From Ostrea edulis (lineage: Eukaryota): a stretch of 64,000 bases of DNA. The first letter of the stretch is position 1. The number at the start of each line of letters is the position of its first letter. Location: positions 62,372,001 to 62,436,000 of the forward strand of contig NC_079172.1 of the NCBI RefSeq assembly GCF_947568905.1. The letters run 5' to 3'. The position numbers and the translations under genes are program-made. Below, piece by piece: positions 32,001-41,000 of the stretch. The notes beneath the pieces were generated by a model. The model did no database searches. It saw nothing but the letters and a program-made list of their open reading frames with translations, and was not told the DNA's origin.

Positions 32001-35000
32001 TCTTCAGTAGCAATAGCTGTAGGGGAGGTTCACCAGTCTCTCTGACAGGACACTTACGTGGTAATATATCACCGGACTACCCAACAAAATAAATATTTCC
32101 TGGTGTAACGAATATATCCTTAATCATTAGCGGGTTAGTCATGGAACCTTTGGAGTAATTAAAGTACACTTCGAAGGCGATGTCAATTTCCTAATGTTTC
32201 CGTTATCACCTAGACCATTGTTAAATGTATATAAATCATTATGTGTAGTAATTATCCAGCGGCTCCACAGTGGTGCAACACTTACTTGTTTTTACATCCG
32301 GGGGCTTCCATTAGTGCTGATTTAAAGAATCGGGCTCATAATATACTTAGAGTGTATTTAGATCAAACTAAATTCAAAATTTACCACGACTAATTTTCAG
32401 ATTTGTTTTACGGTGTATACAACATAATTTGAGGGGGAAAATCTCTACATTCATAAACACAGAAGAATTTATGTTTTGTTAAATGCTATTTATTTTTAGA
32501 ATTTGGACTATAGGAAAGTCAGAAACCTTTCCAAATATGTTGCTGGATATCAATCATCTCTTATTACTGCAGAAAAAATATCTAATTACATTCCATGCTT
32601 GAAAAAAATCGAATGCCAACTATATGAATTGTATCACTGTGGGATATGAGAGAAGTTTTTGTAGGTAAAATAAGGCAAAAAATAAATTAGTTTCCGGTCT
32701 TACTGCAAGGAAGAGGGAGTTTGCTTTAGTGGCAACGGAAATTCCCGAAGGAAAATGCATTTCATATATGGTCTCTATGTCAGATACGACCTCTATGTCA
32801 GATACAATCTCTATGTCAGATAAGGTCTCTATGTTAGATAAGGTCTCTATGTCAGATACAGTCTCTATGTCAGATAAGGTCTCTATGTCAGATACAGTCT
32901 CTATGTCAGATACAGTCTCTATGTCATACAGTCTCTATGTCAGATATGGTCTCTATGTCAGATAAGGTCTCTATGTCATATAAGGTCTTTATGTCAGATA
33001 CGATCTTTATGCTAGTGCCTCCTGATTTATGGACCAGGGGCCCGTTTTACATAACAACTTACGACAAAGTCGCAAGTTTAGATTGTATTACACAGTTATT
33101 ACTTTAAATGAATGAATTTAAACTTTTCTGATGATTAATTTCCAACATTTTCTTTAAGAAAAAGTTTGCATTTGGAGTGAATGGTCTTACAATAAACTGG
33201 AAAATTCCAGTATGTAAAGTTTGTCGTAAGTCGTAAATTATTTTGTAAAACGCGCCCCTGGATTTTAGGTTTTGATGACGTGACTGACGAACGGGATACA
33301 ACGTCTCCTACCGAGAGCGGGGAACGTTACATACCAAAGTGATATATTTATAGATTTTACGTTCCTGCTGTGAGGGACTCCTACTTGAAGTTTAATGGCA
33401 GTAGCTTAGACCTGGCGGCTGTAGATATACAGAGAGGGCGTGACCACGGACTGCTGGCCTACAATTCCTGGAGGAAGTTCTGTTCTCTACCAATCGCAGA
33501 CAAGTTCGAAAATCTGCTGGACCACGAGCCTGAAATGATACAGAAACTCAGGGACATATACAAGTAAGATAACATACACACTGTACACACTACATCGATA
33601 ACATTATTTGTGGTTATGAATTTTTTTGGATTTGGTGACATATTTTACAATATTAAATAATCATATATTGTGAGTAGTTTGAAGTTTTGGGCCCTACACA
33701 GAAATAACCGCAACACAAATCATAAAGCGTGGCTCGCTATAGCTTCATTAATTGCGGTGAAAATTTTGATTTTATTTACCATGGACTTGTGAGTTACATA
33801 AAAAACGTCGATATTAAATATTTTGTTTAAGTTTGGTGGTATATCTTTTTTTAAAAGTTAGTGAAGGGAACATATTAGCAAAGTGAACACTGGAAGCTTC
33901 CCATCGTAAAAACTTAGGTACAGGTCGTGTAGAGATCGAGAGTAAAAACTTTGATTGACTATAGAAAAATATTGATATAATAATTCATTATCAGTTTATT
34001 TTTTTGCTTGTATGTATATCACGTCTACCGTGACACACGAGCACCGTTTCGATTGTTTGATTGTTTTACGTCCTGTCGAGAATTTTTCACTCATAAGGAG
34101 ACGTCACCTGCTGTAGGTAAAGTACCACAAAGTAAGATCTATGTTTAACGCTCAGGAATGTAGGAGTGAGGGTTATTTATCAAGCCAACGCCTGTCGCAA
34201 CACAGGGCCCTCGTTTTGAAGGCCATATCCGAAAGACCCGTGATTCTCACTTCTAAATGTCAATCGTTTGACGAAGGAGTAATAACTACTTATCTCAACG
34301 TCTTAGGTTTGACATGGCACGAGCGGAGCTCTAACTCACGATCTCTCAGTTACGAAGCACACGCTCTACCACTGAGTTACCGCGGCCGATCTCCTCCGTT
34401 TCTAAGGTTATATTTAGCAAAGGAACGTCACTATCTATGATGTACGTTTAAGTTTTGATGCGAACCTTCCAGTTGCGAAGCGAGCGCCCAAACCACTAGG
34501 CTTCTCAACAAATTTGACAGGGAACTGATTTACGGAGTTACGCCCCGTATTCAAATACAGAAAATTCTCAAGTTTACGGAAATTGCATTGATCTCCATGA
34601 AATTAAAATGATTCTGTGGTGTGGGATTTAATGATTTTTGATAGTTACACGTGTTTTGTTGTGGCAAGCCAAATAGGTTACTACTACGCCTTATAACGTT
34701 TACCTGCCCTGCATGTATGTACTGTGTTTAGTTTCAGAAGTCAGTTAATTAATTATGTCATATATAAACTGACTCTGAAATAATAAACAAAATTGCGTTT
34801 ATCAATTTCAACAGTTTTAGTTCCGCTGCTTTAGTTTTTCTCGTATTAATCAACGAATTCAATGATCTGAAGCTTGTCATTTTTCTATCGGGAATGGTAA
34901 CCTTAATTTCTGAAATAATGACGAACCATTTCAGATCACCAGTTGACATAGATCTTCTGACCGGGGCGTTAACAGAGCGGAAGAAAGCTGGAACAGAGGT

Positions 35001-38000
35001 CGGGCCTACCTTTGCATGCATCATTGGTCTACAGTTTAGCGAACTTAAAAAGGGAGACCGATTCTGGTTTGAAAATCCGGATCCAAGAACAGGATTCACG
35101 ATCAGTAAGACAATTATTCTTAGAAGAAAATATTGATAACGATTACACTCGTCAAGCCAGTCTCATGCAATTTTATGAATACGACTCACTGTGATTTTTG
35201 TGGTAAATTTCAGAACGTGCAAGCACAGTTTATCGTTGCTTCTTATTGAATACACAATGTTGTGTTGGTTAACATTGCATACATATATGATGCTTTGTTA
35301 ATTGGTTAACTTTGTTGATGATTTTGATCTGGGTCATATGAACATCTGAGTAGTTTGTACCGGTGTGATAATTAGCAATCATTGATAACAATCATTAATT
35401 AACAATTAATATACTTTACAGAACAACTGAGTGCAATTCGTCGAATGTCCTTGGCTAAAATAATATGTAGTAATTTGAACATCGAAAGAATTCAACAGCG
35501 AGTGATGTTTCTTCCATCGGAGTGAGTAACATTGATATATAATGCATTTTTAGCTCACCTGAGCCAAACATCCAAGTGAGCTTTTCTGACCAAAAAGTGC
35601 TCGTTATCTGTCGTTGTTGTCAGCGTCCTTTTTCATCATAAACTTTTCAGAACTTCATCCTCCTCTCCAGAACCAATCTGCGAATTTCAAACTTGCCACA
35701 GAGTACCCTTGGGGGAAGGGAATACACGTTTGTTCAAATGAAGGGTCATCCCCTTTCCAAGAGGAAATAATTAAGAAAGGCAAAATATAGGATGGGGTAA
35801 CTAAAAATCTTCGATTCTCAAAACACTGCGCCAGAAAAGGTGAAACGTATGAGAAAGCTTCCTAACATAGTCAAGATTCGTGTTCTTCCCAGAGGAAGAA
35901 TGGGGCTACAATAAGAGATCAAAGTTTTACTCTAGGATTGAATATATAAATTAAACTTTCATTAGAATGTTTGCGATTCGGTTTTTATATTAATTTCTCC
36001 ATGAGGAAAATAATTTGTAAATAGAAATAATCATTTGTGAACAGCTGCAGGTCCGCGGAGTAATTTACACGCATGTCGGCCGTCAGCACAAATTAACAGC
36101 AATTGCAGTTTTCTCTGATTTATTGCATGATACTCAGTTTAGGACATGTGTATATTAAAACTCAGTTTAGGACATATGTATATTAAAAGAACAGTTTTGA
36201 AAAACAGAACTGCCTATCTGACTCGAATTTGGGGCTGAAGAAACGCCTGCCGCCTGTTGATTGACAGTTTCAAAGTGTGGGTGCCTGATGCAGAGCCACC
36301 CTTTTTGCGGACAAACACAAGGGAAGAGACCCATTCAGATTTTGATGGCACTATAACTCCATTATCTATTGAGTTTTTCAAATATGCTTCTTCTTCTTTT
36401 TCGAAACCTAATAGAGTTCGTTTTAGTTTAGCACGGACTGGCTAAGCATCCCCAGTATTCATTCACCTTGTGAGTGATTCTCTTGAAAAGGCATATATCC
36501 ATGTCATTTCTCGCGAAAACGACCTGAAATTCGAGAAACAATTCTTGGACTTTATCCGCTTTGGTCTTGGGTAGGTTTTCAACAGATCTCCTTCAGTTTA
36601 CAAGTCTAACAAATAATCAAATAGTTCTGTAAGTGTTTTACTACTCTGAATATTATTTTGAATCTCCAGGTGGTCTTCGATTACTTCGTCAATTGGTGTT
36701 ACAGTTTTGCAACAAGATAGGCACATCCTCAAACTCTTGGTTTGTGATGGAGTAAGGGGAAAGTAAACCCTATACTGTAGAAGCATTTAAATTCGTGGGG
36801 CCAATTTTCGTGGATTGTTGAATTTTTACGGGTTCATGGGGACGTAATTTCGTGGGTTTATATATTTGTAATAAAGATAACTCTGGAATGTCTTTATTCG
36901 TTAAGGATGTAAATTCGTGAGTGAGGGATACCCACGAATTCCACGAAAATTGAGCCATCACGAAATATAATGATTCCACAGTGTACTCTGTGAAGATTGT
37001 ACCATGGCTCCTCCCTCCACAGTAGCATCTAATTTGCCAGCTACGCGTACTGCAGTATGGGGTGGAGTTCTCAAGGGTTTTTTTCTGTAGCAAGACTCTA
37101 GCCACACTGATAGCTTTTTTTGTCAGCTCTGAGTACCTATGCTTTAATTCTTATTCCTTGAATATTGATGCTTTGATCAGCAAGGCTAATAAGTGCCTTA
37201 TTAGTAGAAAGGAAATCGAGGCCAATTATGATTTGTCTGCTACTATAACAGGCCATTCGAAGAGAACTCCTTTAATTTCGAGAACTGTATCATGGGAATA
37301 ATGAGCTTTTATCAAACTATTCTCGCCGACCTTTAGGGTCACCTCTTTGCCAATATTTAATGGTGGTTTCAGTGAAATGGCAAGCCTCTTATTCATGACT
37401 AAAATCTGTGCTGCTGTGTCGACAATGGCCTTACAGAGTCTCATATCAAATGTTGGTCTATGCATTAGATTGGGATGACGATGATCTTGTCCTTTTCCGT
37501 TGTTTACAGTCTAATGCAAAGCGACCCATTTCCTCACAATTATAGCAGGAACTTCCTCTAGCTGGGGAAGGTGATTTTGCTTGACCTATGGTTCTCTGAG
37601 GAGATCTTTGTCTGCTTGAGAGTGAGTTCATAAACTTATCAATGTTGAAATTTACTGCTTCCAGACCCAACTTTAAAGTTTCGACATCTGCTGTTAGCTT
37701 ATCCACTCGAGTTTGAGGGTGGATTGTGCGAGAATAAATTCTGATTCTTCCTCGCTGTCACTGTGTCATTGAACCGAACTTTCATGACTTCAGGCATACG
37801 GGCTCCTAAAATAAGTCTTTGGTAGTTAATAGCTGCCTTAACATGCTGTAGGGCAATTTCTAAGGTTGTTGGATCTTTGCCCATGTCTGTTAATGTTGCC
37901 CATTTGAATGATATCTGTGATTATTGTATCTATGACACTTTCAGGTACAAGTTCGGCAAGCTCCTCAACCGACTAGTTCTCCTATTTCATATTTTGAAGC

Positions 38001-41000
38001 TTTCTTCGAACAGTAAGAGGCAAATCCTCTTGCCCAAATTTTGCCTTAAATTTCTTGCATAGGTCCTTTTAGTTATTTTGGACTAGTTTGGCACATGTGC
38101 AATAGAATTTTATTGCTTTGTCTCATAAGGATTCAATTAGTCTTTCAAGGCGCTGTTCATCAGTCCATCTATATTGGTCTGCAATTCTTTCAAACTGGAC
38201 TTTGAATGGGCATCACTCAGTGCATCCGTGAAATATAGCCATCTTAGGTGGTCCATCATTGTGGGAGCCATTTGGGCTAGAATATTTCAAGCCACTATTG
38301 GTTCCACCTTTCGAGTTAAATTTTGTAGCTGAAGTATGTGTTACACTGCTTGTGGGGCCAGACTTAGTCAAGCTACTGTTAGCAGAAACACTTCTAGTTA
38401 GTTCAGCACTGGCCACCAGTCCCGAATCAAAAGTATCTGACTTCAGACCTCTTTGAATGTCTACTTTGGATGAACTGTCTCTTCCATAAATGCCTTGCAG
38501 TGCTAGTTTATCAAAACACTCCCCTTTTACAAATAAGTCCGATTTGCTCTCCGTCGGCTTGCTTTCCATATGTTCTATCATGTAAGCCATCCTCTTCATT
38601 TCCGAATCATAATTTCTTTGCATTGCTTTATAGTGTTCATGGATTTCTTTTATCTTGATTGTAAATCTTTCGACACATTGTCTAATGCGATACTTTGTTC
38701 CTCATCTTTTATCTCTTTTATTGAATCAATCAGTGTAAGCGAAATTTCGAAGGAAATCTTTTCTTCTGTTAGCAATTTTTGTAGAGTTGCAGTAGTGTTT
38801 TGAAGGTTTTCCTCCACATCTTTGAGAGCGATATAACCCTTTTTGTCCCCAAGTTTAAGAATGGCGACAGCTCGTTGAGCGCCGATTCCCTCAAGGATCA
38901 AGAGATTGTCCATGGATGCCGTAATTTAAAGGTTTGTCATATTTGGAAATATGTTGGCAACCTAGAGTGAGTTTAACTCTTCTTCTGATACGTGAATCTC
39001 CAAGATGTCATCCTTTGACATTTTAAAACAATTACAATTAATATCGTCTGTAAATCTTTTTGTCCAAATAAGTGCTAAATGTGTGTCTGCATGTTTACCA
39101 TCATATAATGCAACGAATATATAGGAAACACGCACTCTAGGGGAACCAACTTTCTTTTTGTTTGTATCCTTGCGACGGCGTTTAAGGTCACAATTGAATG
39201 GTAGAATTGGCGTTGATTTCCTTGATTGCAGAATTTAGCTCTTCAATTTGTCTACAGATTTCTGTGTCGTGCACTTTAAATTGGCTGGGTCAGCATGACT
39301 TTTCGATGTACATGTATTATACATTAAGTGCGGAATAACAAGGCAATTCAATAAATGTAACCTTACAGTTGGGATAGTGGCCTACAATGTTCACCAGTCT
39401 ACGATATTGGGACAAAATGAATTCAATAAATACAGTATCATCCCAAGATCTAACGCTTGTGAAGTGGCCTGCTTTTACAGAGATATCACAAGTACCCAGC
39501 CATACATAGAACAAATATTTTCTATTGCAATTTGTCTTCAAAGTTTTTTTCTAAGTACAGTAATCAATAGCTGGGGCTCTACGCCAGCCTGGTTCACACC
39601 AATATTCAACAAATCTAAATCTATCCATTTTATCGCAAAACCTTTGCTATCAGACAATAGAACTGGTGTACAGTGAAGACTGGAAGATGTTTTTTCTCCT
39701 TAAGAAGTTACAGTATCTATCTTTGGTTTTGACAATGCCATTAAAAAAAGATGAGACTTTGCAAAATTTGGACGCTTTGTCAGGAGGCCAACGTAAAAAT
39801 GAGTAAAATTGTTTACAAATTATTATTAAGTAGTTAATTAATAGCCAAAACACTAAGAAAAAAGCGAGACTAAGGATTTTTTTTATTATGGTGGGGATTG
39901 CGTACCAACAAACGAAAACACGCCAAAATGACAAACCTCAAAATGATTAAACTATTGCCAAAAATTTAAATTTGAGAATTAAAGATTTTTTTTTTTTTTT
40001 TTTTTTTATTTTTTTTTTTTTTTTAGAAAAAACGTTTATTGTTGATTTTCAATGTTTTCTATGATGAAAATACTAATGACCCAAGAACTAGGGAAAAACA
40101 TGAAACTTTCATTCTGGCAGAGTTACTGAATATCCAAGTTATATGGATAAGTATTTCCTTCTGACACCAATGTTGTGCTGGTCAATTACTTCGGACTGCA
40201 GGAATTCAGTCTGGGGTCCGGTACATGATGTTCTCTGAAGCGAGGATCAACACTGAGGAGGCATCAGCTTAATTCGTGCCGCTACAGTATTTTCAGAATT
40301 TACTTCTCTCAGTTTTTTTCTCATTTCTTCAATCAGATTTCTTTTATCTAGGTCATCTGTATCAGAGAAAGGATCCGCCATCCCACTATCAAAAATTTCT
40401 ACGTCAATTTCTTCCAAATATCCAAGTTCTCAGGATTTTCCTTCCATTTTTAATTTTTCTGTAAAATTTCTATAACTCAGCAAGTCCATTTAGCAGACGT
40501 TTGTGTCATTTTTCAATTTAGAGTTATTGCCCTTTCCTTATTTTTACAGTAATGAACATTTGATGTTATTTGTACTATTTTGTTAATAGTGTGAGTAATT
40601 CAGTTGAAATTTGATAGTAAATGTAAGATTTTTCCAAAACTTGATGTTAAAAAGTTGTATGAGAAAATGCTCGAAAAACAAATAATTCGGTTTTTTATGT
40701 GTATATTTTGATAACAGTACATATACCATAGGGTTACCATGTGAGGTGTGATGTAAACATTGAACAATTGCAACTGTACACGAGTATCTCTTAAAACATA
40801 TCAAAATTAACTTCATTGGAGAATGAATAGAAAAAGTATTCAATATGTTTCTATAGGAAAAGTATCATCAATGGAGATATAGCTGACTTGCATAGTATAC
40901 TGTATGGGAAAAACAATCTTATAAATCCTCTTCTCAAGAACTGCAAGACTATGATTAGTCGTATCAATATGCATATATTTCAGGATGTGTGGATTCATTC

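Follow-up and report, generated by a model that had tools for sequence, protein, structure and literature searches.

Can a gene for a protein of the SGNH-hydrolase family be part of a Ty3/Gypsy retrotransposon, and if so, what would its product do there? The question is raised by a stretch of 64,000 nucleotides from Ostrea edulis (NCBI RefSeq assembly GCF_947568905.1, contig NC_079172.1, positions 62,372,001 to 62,436,000 of the forward strand). This whole stretch is called the window below, and positions are counted from its first letter. Its minus strand carries the remains of a long terminal repeat (LTR) retrotransposon in which an additional, decayed open reading frame (ORF) with the blocks of an SGNH hydrolase lies upstream of gag. 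Kapitonov and Jurka are said to have described, in 2003, an esterase domain in ORF1 of CR1/L2-type non-LTR elements. The best explanation of our findings as a whole, and in our judgment a probable one, is that the ORF is an integral 5' SGNH-hydrolase gene of a Ty3/Gypsy element. The interest lies in the lineage that carries it, not in the relic copy of the window.

The ORF and the element that carries it

A preliminary description of this DNA had noted four SGNH blocks, in order, in a decayed minus-strand frame, and translation located every one of them: LLSDSKG at 39660-39640, WCEPG at 39601-39587, WLGTCD at 39502-39485 and DGKH at 39102-39091. In a three-frame minus-strand translation of 35900-40400, the ORF starts at ATG 39741 and ends with the TAG at 38964-38962. 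Its frame is broken by four in-frame stops (39702-39700, 39553-39551, 39319-39317 and 39292-39290) and by two frameshifts, near 39640 and 39210. A profile made from 23 intact homologues was compared with every stop-free six-frame piece of the window, 2965 in all, and matched four colinear pieces of the ORF and these alone: 39699-39541 (profile positions 17-37, E 0.085), 39550-39320 (80-142, the best match, E 2e-17), 39289-39191 (154-184, E 2e-3) and 39234-38965 (187-239, E 1.5e-7). The next best of the 2965 pieces reached an E value of 3.2.

The element in which the ORF lies is an LTR retrotransposon of the Ty3/Gypsy (Metaviridae) type, present in the window as an old copy that has lost its 3' part. 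When the own genome (895 Mb) was searched at the DNA level, three fuller members of the family came up; they are designated C4, C8 and C1 and are 78-88% identical to the window copy. With their help the following parts can be told apart, in the order of transcription (RT, reverse transcriptase; MITE, miniature inverted-repeat transposable element; SINE, short interspersed element):

40171..40304, minus strand: 5' LTR, about 134 bp, with CA end; the first ~13 nt are degenerate in the window copy
39742..40170, minus strand: leader, aligning with the C4 and C8 leaders as far as 39878
39250..39877, minus strand: 628-bp stretch with the ORF's ATG and SGNH blocks I-III, deleted in C4 and C8
38962..39741, minus strand: decayed SGNH-hydrolase-family ORF, 780 bp, ~259 codons, recognized by colinear profile matches, motifs and the fold of a homologue
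37461..38937, minus strand: gag with several stops and frameshifts, recognized by tblastn with C4 gag pieces (67-82% identity)
37043..37585, minus strand: aspartic protease region, DTAA motif at 37420-37409 (Pfam gag-asp_proteas, E 0.0016; tblastn)
36772..36982, minus strand: 211-bp MITE/SINE-like repeat, a secondary insertion absent from C4, C8 and C1
36291..36771, minus strand: protease-RT linker and first RT residues, ending in VRKKGGS; homology to C4, C8 and C1 ends at 36291

The 5' LTR is the only one kept: positions 40291-40171 are 88% identical (blastn) to the 137-bp LTRs of C4, C8 and C1, and no 3' LTR is present in the window copy. Two nucleotides past the LTR, the leader has a primer-binding-like site that starts with TGG, and it contains an A-rich run at about 40012-39985. 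The gag has an N-terminal helix-hairpin-helix, then a capsid region (38437-37934) and a zinc knuckle (37547-37506). The gag ATG at 38913 stands 48 nt past the stop of the ORF, which agrees with the close spacing given in the preliminary description. An ATG of the gag frame already occurs at 38937, corresponding to the frame's first ATG in C4; in the window a stop follows it. Two of the landmarks that had been named further downstream, DTAA and the start of RT, were confirmed, but the supposed CCHC knuckle reads CCRC in the window copy and is CCHC in the better copies (Pfam, E 5e-8). DTAA is also found in C4 and C8, so that this protease motif is native to the family and no product of decay. 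As homology to C4, C8 and C1 ends at 36291 in every case, and no further pol was found anywhere in the 64-kb window, the copy must have been truncated in the early part of RT.

Several side observations concern the same region. The 211-bp repeat has TGTGGAA..TTCTACA ends and internal CACGAA motifs and is represented in the genome by over 40 copies that are 90-94% identical; an Rfam search of 36000-40400, this repeat included, gave no match. The helix-hairpin-helix of gag (window 38653-38925, minus strand; L040:8295-8624) is an unusual nucleic-acid-binding module for a gag N-terminus. It matches HHH_3 at E 1e-7 in C4, above the Pfam cut-off, and weakly in the window. Finally, two exons of an animal haem peroxidase lie on the plus strand at 33370-33567 and 34894-35136 (PF03098, E 1e-17 and 4e-19, covering 387-502 of the 530 profile positions). 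The relic element is found 1.15 kb downstream of them on the opposite strand, in the last intron or the 3' flank of the peroxidase gene.

Sister copies and related elements

Does the ORF belong to the element? The sister copies bear on this most directly. The window LTR matches twice in each fuller copy, about 5-7 kb apart. C4 and C8 have the features of Ty3/Gypsy elements: paired LTRs (97.8% identical in C4, 97.1% in C8) with TG..CA ends, a target duplication (the 4-bp ACAT in C4), a primer-binding site and a polypurine tract (GGGGAGGAG, ahead of the 3' LTR of C4). Pfam matches to pieces of C4 run in the order Retrotrans_gag, zf-CCHC, RVT_1, RT_RNaseH_2, RT_RNaseH, Integrase_H2C2, rve and Integrase_p58_C, which is that of Ty3/Gypsy elements, and its gag reaches E values of 7e-8 (Retrotrans_gag), 5e-8 (zf-CCHC) and 1e-7 (HHH_3).

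From the 3' end of the ORF into RT, window and C4 are 86-88% identical in each block that they share, so that the similar decay of the SGNH and gag-pol parts suspected from the window itself holds up. The 628 bp from 39877 to 39250, on the other hand, return themselves alone in a DNA search of the own genome. C4 and C8 join 39878 straight to 39249, with AAAT microhomology at a junction that has neither GT..AG ends nor terminal repeats; the breakpoints are identical in the two copies, which lie at different loci with an LTR pair each. What C4 and C8 do keep, in the same place between leader and gag, is the C-terminal third of the ORF, in frame and with its YDGIH. In the window, the stop-free piece 39289-39191 and its profile alignment run unbroken across the breakpoint at 39250/39249. 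Within this family the window copy alone keeps the whole ORF, C4 and C8 sharing the 628-bp deletion, and these comparisons show the ORF to be an ancestral and integral part of the element. (Loss of an intron through retrotransposition of a spliced RNA was considered for C4 and C8 and ruled out, given the AAAT microhomology and ends that are not GT..AG.)

The ORF is not confined to this family. When the block III piece was searched as protein against the own genome, open homologues of about 30% identity were found, and a word search yielded 32 homologues; those with a name are from Crassostrea gigas and Saccostrea cucullata, and PF00657 is carried by one of the 32. Neighbours in the ESM Atlas are mostly from Mollusca, with one cluster from Annelida. 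Thirteen other homologue contexts were checked, with the F2 family and the F3 locus, both of the own genome, counted once each. In ten of them the ORF is followed within 50-370 bp by gag and then, where the contig reaches that far, by protease or pol; four of the ten also proved to have paired LTRs, with 99.0-99.9% identity.

At seven loci of the F2 family, the SGNH ORF has 238 aa, and a PNMA-like gag follows about 310 bp downstream. Among the F2 copies opened further, the one on C2 has a 516-bp LTR pair (99% identical), while that on C3 has a pair with 98.5-100% identity in two blocks and a 1287-aa pol with RVT_1, RNase H, Integrase_H2C2 and rve. Homologue P0008 is followed by gag and pol at four of five places, and the LTRs at two of them (L057 and L058) are 1.1 kb long and 99.8-99.9% identical. 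The P0029 element (L060) has a 247-aa ORF, a 456-aa Retrotrans_gag ORF and a 1579-aa pol. The ORF-gag layout also occurs with P0010 (L059), P0022 (L062), P0012 (L068) and P0074 (L069); on the short contigs of P0001 (L065) and P0005 (L066), the start of an F2-type gag follows the ORF; and in the decayed L061, the downstream ORF is a gag N-terminus of group A (F2 and its relatives L058, L059 and L062). The pol order of protease, RT, RNase H and integrase (PR-RT-RH-IN) is present in C4, in F2 and in the elements L057-L060. Two or more other deep Gypsy lineages in bivalve-type assemblies thus have the layout of 5' ORF, gag and pol (PR-RT-RH-IN) in intact form. An LTR lineage with a 5' accessory hydrolase gene, as first proposed from the window, is supported by fold as well as linkage and extends beyond the window's own family.

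The remaining three contexts (F3, L063 and L067) are CR1-like non-LTR elements of bivalves, which carry the same SGNH family as their 5' ORF. At F3 (own genome C9:41335171-41335881; L053:9202-9969), which matches the SGNH profile at E 5e-56, the ORF is followed by a 2A-like NPGP and an ORF with a PHD, and then by remnants of apurinic/apyrimidinic endonuclease (APE) and RT. L063 has a Cys-rich ORF after the SGNH ORF; in Mytilus coruscus (L067) a homologue of this Cys-rich ORF also follows the SGNH ORF, and further on come Exo_endo_phos_2 (E 8e-8) and RVT_1 (E 4e-22). F3 is taken as a non-LTR context because L067 and L063 share the order of SGNH ORF and Cys-rich ORF. That F3 might instead be an LTR fragment split by a long interspersed element was ruled out, there being no SGNH-bearing Gypsy gag or pol within 16 kb. 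As an observation on these elements, the bivalve non-LTR relatives have three ORFs: a separate SGNH ORF 5' of a Cys-rich/PHD ORF1, and then an APE-RT ORF2. CR1 differs in that its ORF1 is a fused PHD-esterase.

Two further observations concern the sampled sequences. P0033 (NCBI MCG7868370.1) is filed under a metagenome-assembled genome (MAG) of 'Candidatus Thiodiazotropha taylori' and falls in the 90% cluster of P0008; most likely it is DNA of the host lucinid clam that was binned into the symbiont MAG. Among the F2-type loci, there are three pairs with identical scores (C2:19376796/19441030, C8:46120002/46709312 and C10:45727231/45836236), 65-590 kb apart on their chromosomes. In the C2 pair, some 3.2 kb are near-identical, with one amino-acid difference in the gag ORF. 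The three pairs are either segmental duplications or assembly duplicates.

Enzyme, scaffold or passenger?

What kind of protein does the ORF encode? In an alignment of 23 sequences, S29, G55, G86-T87-C88 and T91 are invariant, while D214 and H217 are conserved in 90% or more of them. The block I serine is kept in all 23, with SDS, STS, SNS or ATS in place of the usual GDS (LLSDSKG in the window). The invariant G55 provides the glycine of block II (WCEPGW in the window), and the DxxH of block V is present as DGKH in the window and DGIH in C4. Block III is where the family departs from the canon: its position, assigned from the order of the motifs and from secondary structure in the model described below, has G-T-C instead of the oxyanion Asn in all 23 sequences and in the window (GTCD in 22, GTCN in one), and one non-LTR relative has GACN. 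The replacement of Asn by Cys noted in the window is therefore an invariant of the family.

Searches by sequence say little about the family. PF00657 (Lipase_GDSL) is reached by three of the 23 members, the best at E 7e-6; the intact F2 ORF had no Pfam match, and ten pieces of the window gave weak zf-CCHC and protease matches only and none to SGNH. PDB sequence searches with a single protein, with the profile and with P0030 were uninformative, and it was the fold search that gave the link. For this an AlphaFold2 model was made of a natural intact F2 homologue (L006:1213-1926:-), the frames of the window being neither repaired nor joined. The model is of high confidence (mean pLDDT 92.8, pTM 0.89). 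Foldseek returned 62 PDB matches at E<=1e-3, and among the matches listed all have the SGNH/GDSL fold. With VIA-align, SGNH/GDSL structures match at Z 15-18, with a root-mean-square deviation (rmsd) of 2.5-3.0 Å over 175-185 residues. PAF-AH Ib alpha (1wab) has a Z of 15.3, and the non-catalytic OSK domain of Oskar (5cd9) is found lower in the list, at Z 14.3. The fold foreseen in the preliminary description is thus that of an intact relative, to which the window copy is tied by its profile matches. Between leader and gag, then, the element of the window encodes a stand-alone SGNH/GDSL-fold protein of about 240-260 residues.

Is the protein used? The F2 ORF (L006) and its L065 homologue, with 88% amino-acid identity, differ by a dS of 0.54 and a dN of 0.057 (dN/dS 0.105), and in this pair the SGNH ORF (88%) is better conserved than the adjoining gag N-terminus (75%). 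The protein thus evolves under purifying selection and must be in use. It may well be an active Ser-His-Asp acyl-esterase, a reading of the conserved residues that we hold to be somewhat better than even, with the Cys or a neighbouring residue taking the place of Asn in the oxyanion hole. By analogy with ORF1p of ZfL2-1, such an esterase would act on lipids or membranes during the assembly or trafficking of particles.

Several points weigh against an integral hydrolase gene. No member has the canonical oxyanion Asn, and block I of the F2 lineage is STS or SNS, not SDS. Sequence searches of Pfam and PDB give no answer for the window pieces and for the majority of members, so that assignment to the SGNH family rests on the fold and a minority of Pfam matches. 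The window copy, as a relic, can no longer function. Moreover, the shared deletion of C4 and C8, with LTR pairs of their own at separate loci, means that a deleted derivative was still mobilised and that the ORF was dispensable in cis.

The main rival keeps the ORF as an integral gene and takes away the enzyme: the SGNH fold would serve as an RNA-binding or scaffold module, similar to OSK of Oskar, or as a chaperone similar to ORF1p. The loss of the oxyanion Asn in all members and the degenerate block I (SDS, STS, SNS or ATS) are what one might expect of such a protein; the OSK domain does match the model, and the homologous position in non-LTR elements is held by the RNA-packaging ORF1. However, Ser29 is invariant, Asp214 and His217 are nearly so, and selection is strong, whereas OSK has lost the triad; in LTR elements, furthermore, RNA binding is already supplied by gag and its nucleocapsid. 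We regard a non-enzymatic role as unlikely, if still the most serious competitor of an active esterase.

Less probable again, with perhaps a slim chance of being right, is a selfish or neutral passenger, a module that hops between retroelements and has no part in their replication. This would explain why copies of the window family continued to be mobilised without two thirds of the ORF and why one subfamily is found in unrelated classes of element. It is difficult to reconcile, however, with the strong purifying selection, with the same position, length and conserved N-terminus in elements whose RTs are just 32-43% identical, and with young copies in which all three ORFs are intact. That a fragment of a non-LTR esterase or host gene had landed by chance in the leader of this one copy is close to refuted. 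Blocks I-III do lie in 628 bp that the sister copies lack and that occur nowhere else in the genome, and the nearest own-genome match to the block III piece is in a non-LTR context. But C4 and C8 do have the last third of the ORF, which is not part of the 628 bp, one stop-free piece and its alignment span a junction that resembles a microhomology deletion, and the same layout recurs in ten of the 13 other contexts.

Exchange, expression and known systems

If the ORF is an integral gene, how did it come to be in such different elements? RTs are 73-82% identical within group A; the window family has 42-43% RT identity to group A, and L060 has 32-35% to everything else. The gags of the window family, group A and L060 have no detectable likeness to one another. 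In the SGNH tree there are four deep lineages: the window copy, on a long branch; L060 with P0027; the non-LTR sequences (F3, L063 and P0030); and group A. Between L060 and group A the SGNH proteins are 38-40% identical, compared with 34-35% for RT; within group A, SGNH identity is 41-59% while that of RT is 73-82%, so that SGNH diverges much faster there. This pattern, together with a non-LTR clade among the LTR-borne sequences, is suggestive of a module that was exchanged between elements or captured several times from one pool. We hold it to be no more than a suggestion, since such identities could also arise if a constrained enzyme core were saturated.

The position of the ORF also has consequences for translation. 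In intact copies (L058:7732-10063, L059, L060, L062 and the F2 copy L049), leaders of 0.8-1.3 kb contain 14-24 AUGs, which is the number expected by chance, and the spacers before gag, 244-365 nt long, contain AUGs as well. It is therefore implausible that ribosomes reach either ORF by scanning from the cap, and the ORF and gag are probably expressed from different RNAs, through splicing, or by internal initiation, which is a weaker inference than those above. Contigs from two small libraries of unspecified type cover the end of the leader, the ORF and the start of gag in an F2 copy, and they contain no joint. As a separate observation, several spacers have a pyrimidine tract and an AG between a few and about 70 nt before the gag ATG, which are candidate splice acceptors.

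A more ambitious scheme would combine all of this: a portable 5' SGNH cassette exchanged between CR1-like elements and several deep Ty3/Gypsy lineages of bivalves, an active oxyanion hole with Cys, an unspliced accessory message next to a spliced or internally initiated gag-pol, which would turn the retroviral order of expression around, and a lipid- or membrane-dependent step in assembly or in spread from cell to cell. We consider the whole scheme rather improbable, a little less so than the passenger.

How new is this arrangement? SGNH esterases are known from ORF1 of CR1, L2 and RTEX non-LTR elements, and the structure of the ZfL2-1 esterase has been solved (4c1b; Schneider et al. 2013, PMC3905857). 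As in ORF1p of ZfL2-1 and CR1/L2 elements, the bivalve protein has an SGNH fold with a Ser/Asp/His triad and PAF-AH as a structural neighbour, and its gene is borne by a retroelement upstream of the polymerase gene; the bivalve non-LTR clade (F3, L063 and the Mytilus L067) carries the same subfamily as the Gypsy ORF. Unlike ZfL2-1, however, the host element is a Ty3/Gypsy element with a gag of its own, the protein is encoded in a separate ORF without coiled coil or PHD, and block III has Cys where ZfL2-1 has N195. A profile sequence search does not reach 4c1b. The best structural matches are PAF-AH Ib alpha, bacterial GDSL acylhydrolases and sialate O-acetylesterases (1wab, 4iyj, 4hf7 and 7pzg), which superimpose on the model at Z 15-17 and an rmsd of 2.8-3.1 Å over 174-184 residues; these differ in being cellular enzymes with the canonical Asn, and sequence identity is 12-18%.

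The closest precedent among LTR elements comes from bdelloid rotifers, in which Vesta LTR elements and Athena/Terminon elements have a GDSL esterase/lipase ORF3 (Rodriguez, Kenefick & Arkhipova 2017, PMC5408684). In Vesta this ORF lies 3' of pol, in the position of env, with S, G, N and H intact, and the bdelloid ORFs do not cluster with non-LTR esterases (PMC5408684). Vesta and the bivalve elements have in common an accessory SGNH/GDSL ORF without transmembrane or coiled-coil segments, which is shared with a second class of retroelement in the same hosts. The bivalve ORF differs from it in lying 5' of gag, in having Cys for Asn, in clustering with a non-LTR clade and in belonging to another host phylum. 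Ngaro tyrosine-recombinase elements have a Hydro-SGNH ORF after the recombinase, according to the summary of Goodwin & Poulter 2004 in PMC9210276. Ngaro resembles the bivalve elements in being a gag-bearing retroelement with an extra SGNH-hydrolase ORF of unproven function, and is set apart by its tyrosine recombinase and split direct repeats, in contrast to the rve integrase and plain LTRs of the bivalve elements opened. The latter are no Ngaro/DIRS elements: rve and Integrase_H2C2 are present, the LTRs are plain, and there was no match to a tyrosine recombinase.

The preliminary description was thus right about the known occurrence in non-LTR ORF1, but it overlooked the GDSL ORF3 of Vesta, the Hydro-SGNH ORF of Ngaro and the bivalve non-LTR relatives. 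In the full-text literature searched (Repbase and Dfam lay outside the search), no SGNH ORF 5' of gag was found in a mollusc Ty3/Gypsy element, and neither a survey of mollusc LTR elements (PMC6238403) nor recent papers on Gypsy elements mention one. SGNH domains in retroelements are therefore already known, and it is the position 5' of gag in bivalve Ty3/Gypsy elements that we did not find described in that literature.

Bivalve Ty3/Gypsy elements join non-LTR, Ngaro, Penelope-like Athena and rotifer LTR elements as recruiters of an SGNH protein. Because of the 5' position, gag has a 240-codon ORF and an AUG-rich leader of about 1 kb ahead of it, and one must ask how it comes to be translated; the presence of one subfamily in LTR and non-LTR elements of the same hosts is evidence for module exchange or a common pool. 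The invariant change from Asn to Cys is open to biochemical test, and since young, fully open copies exist (with LTRs that are 99.0-99.9% identical), the protein can be studied. The repeated recruitment of SGNH esterases by such different elements points to a step in retrotransposition that may generally depend on lipids or esters.

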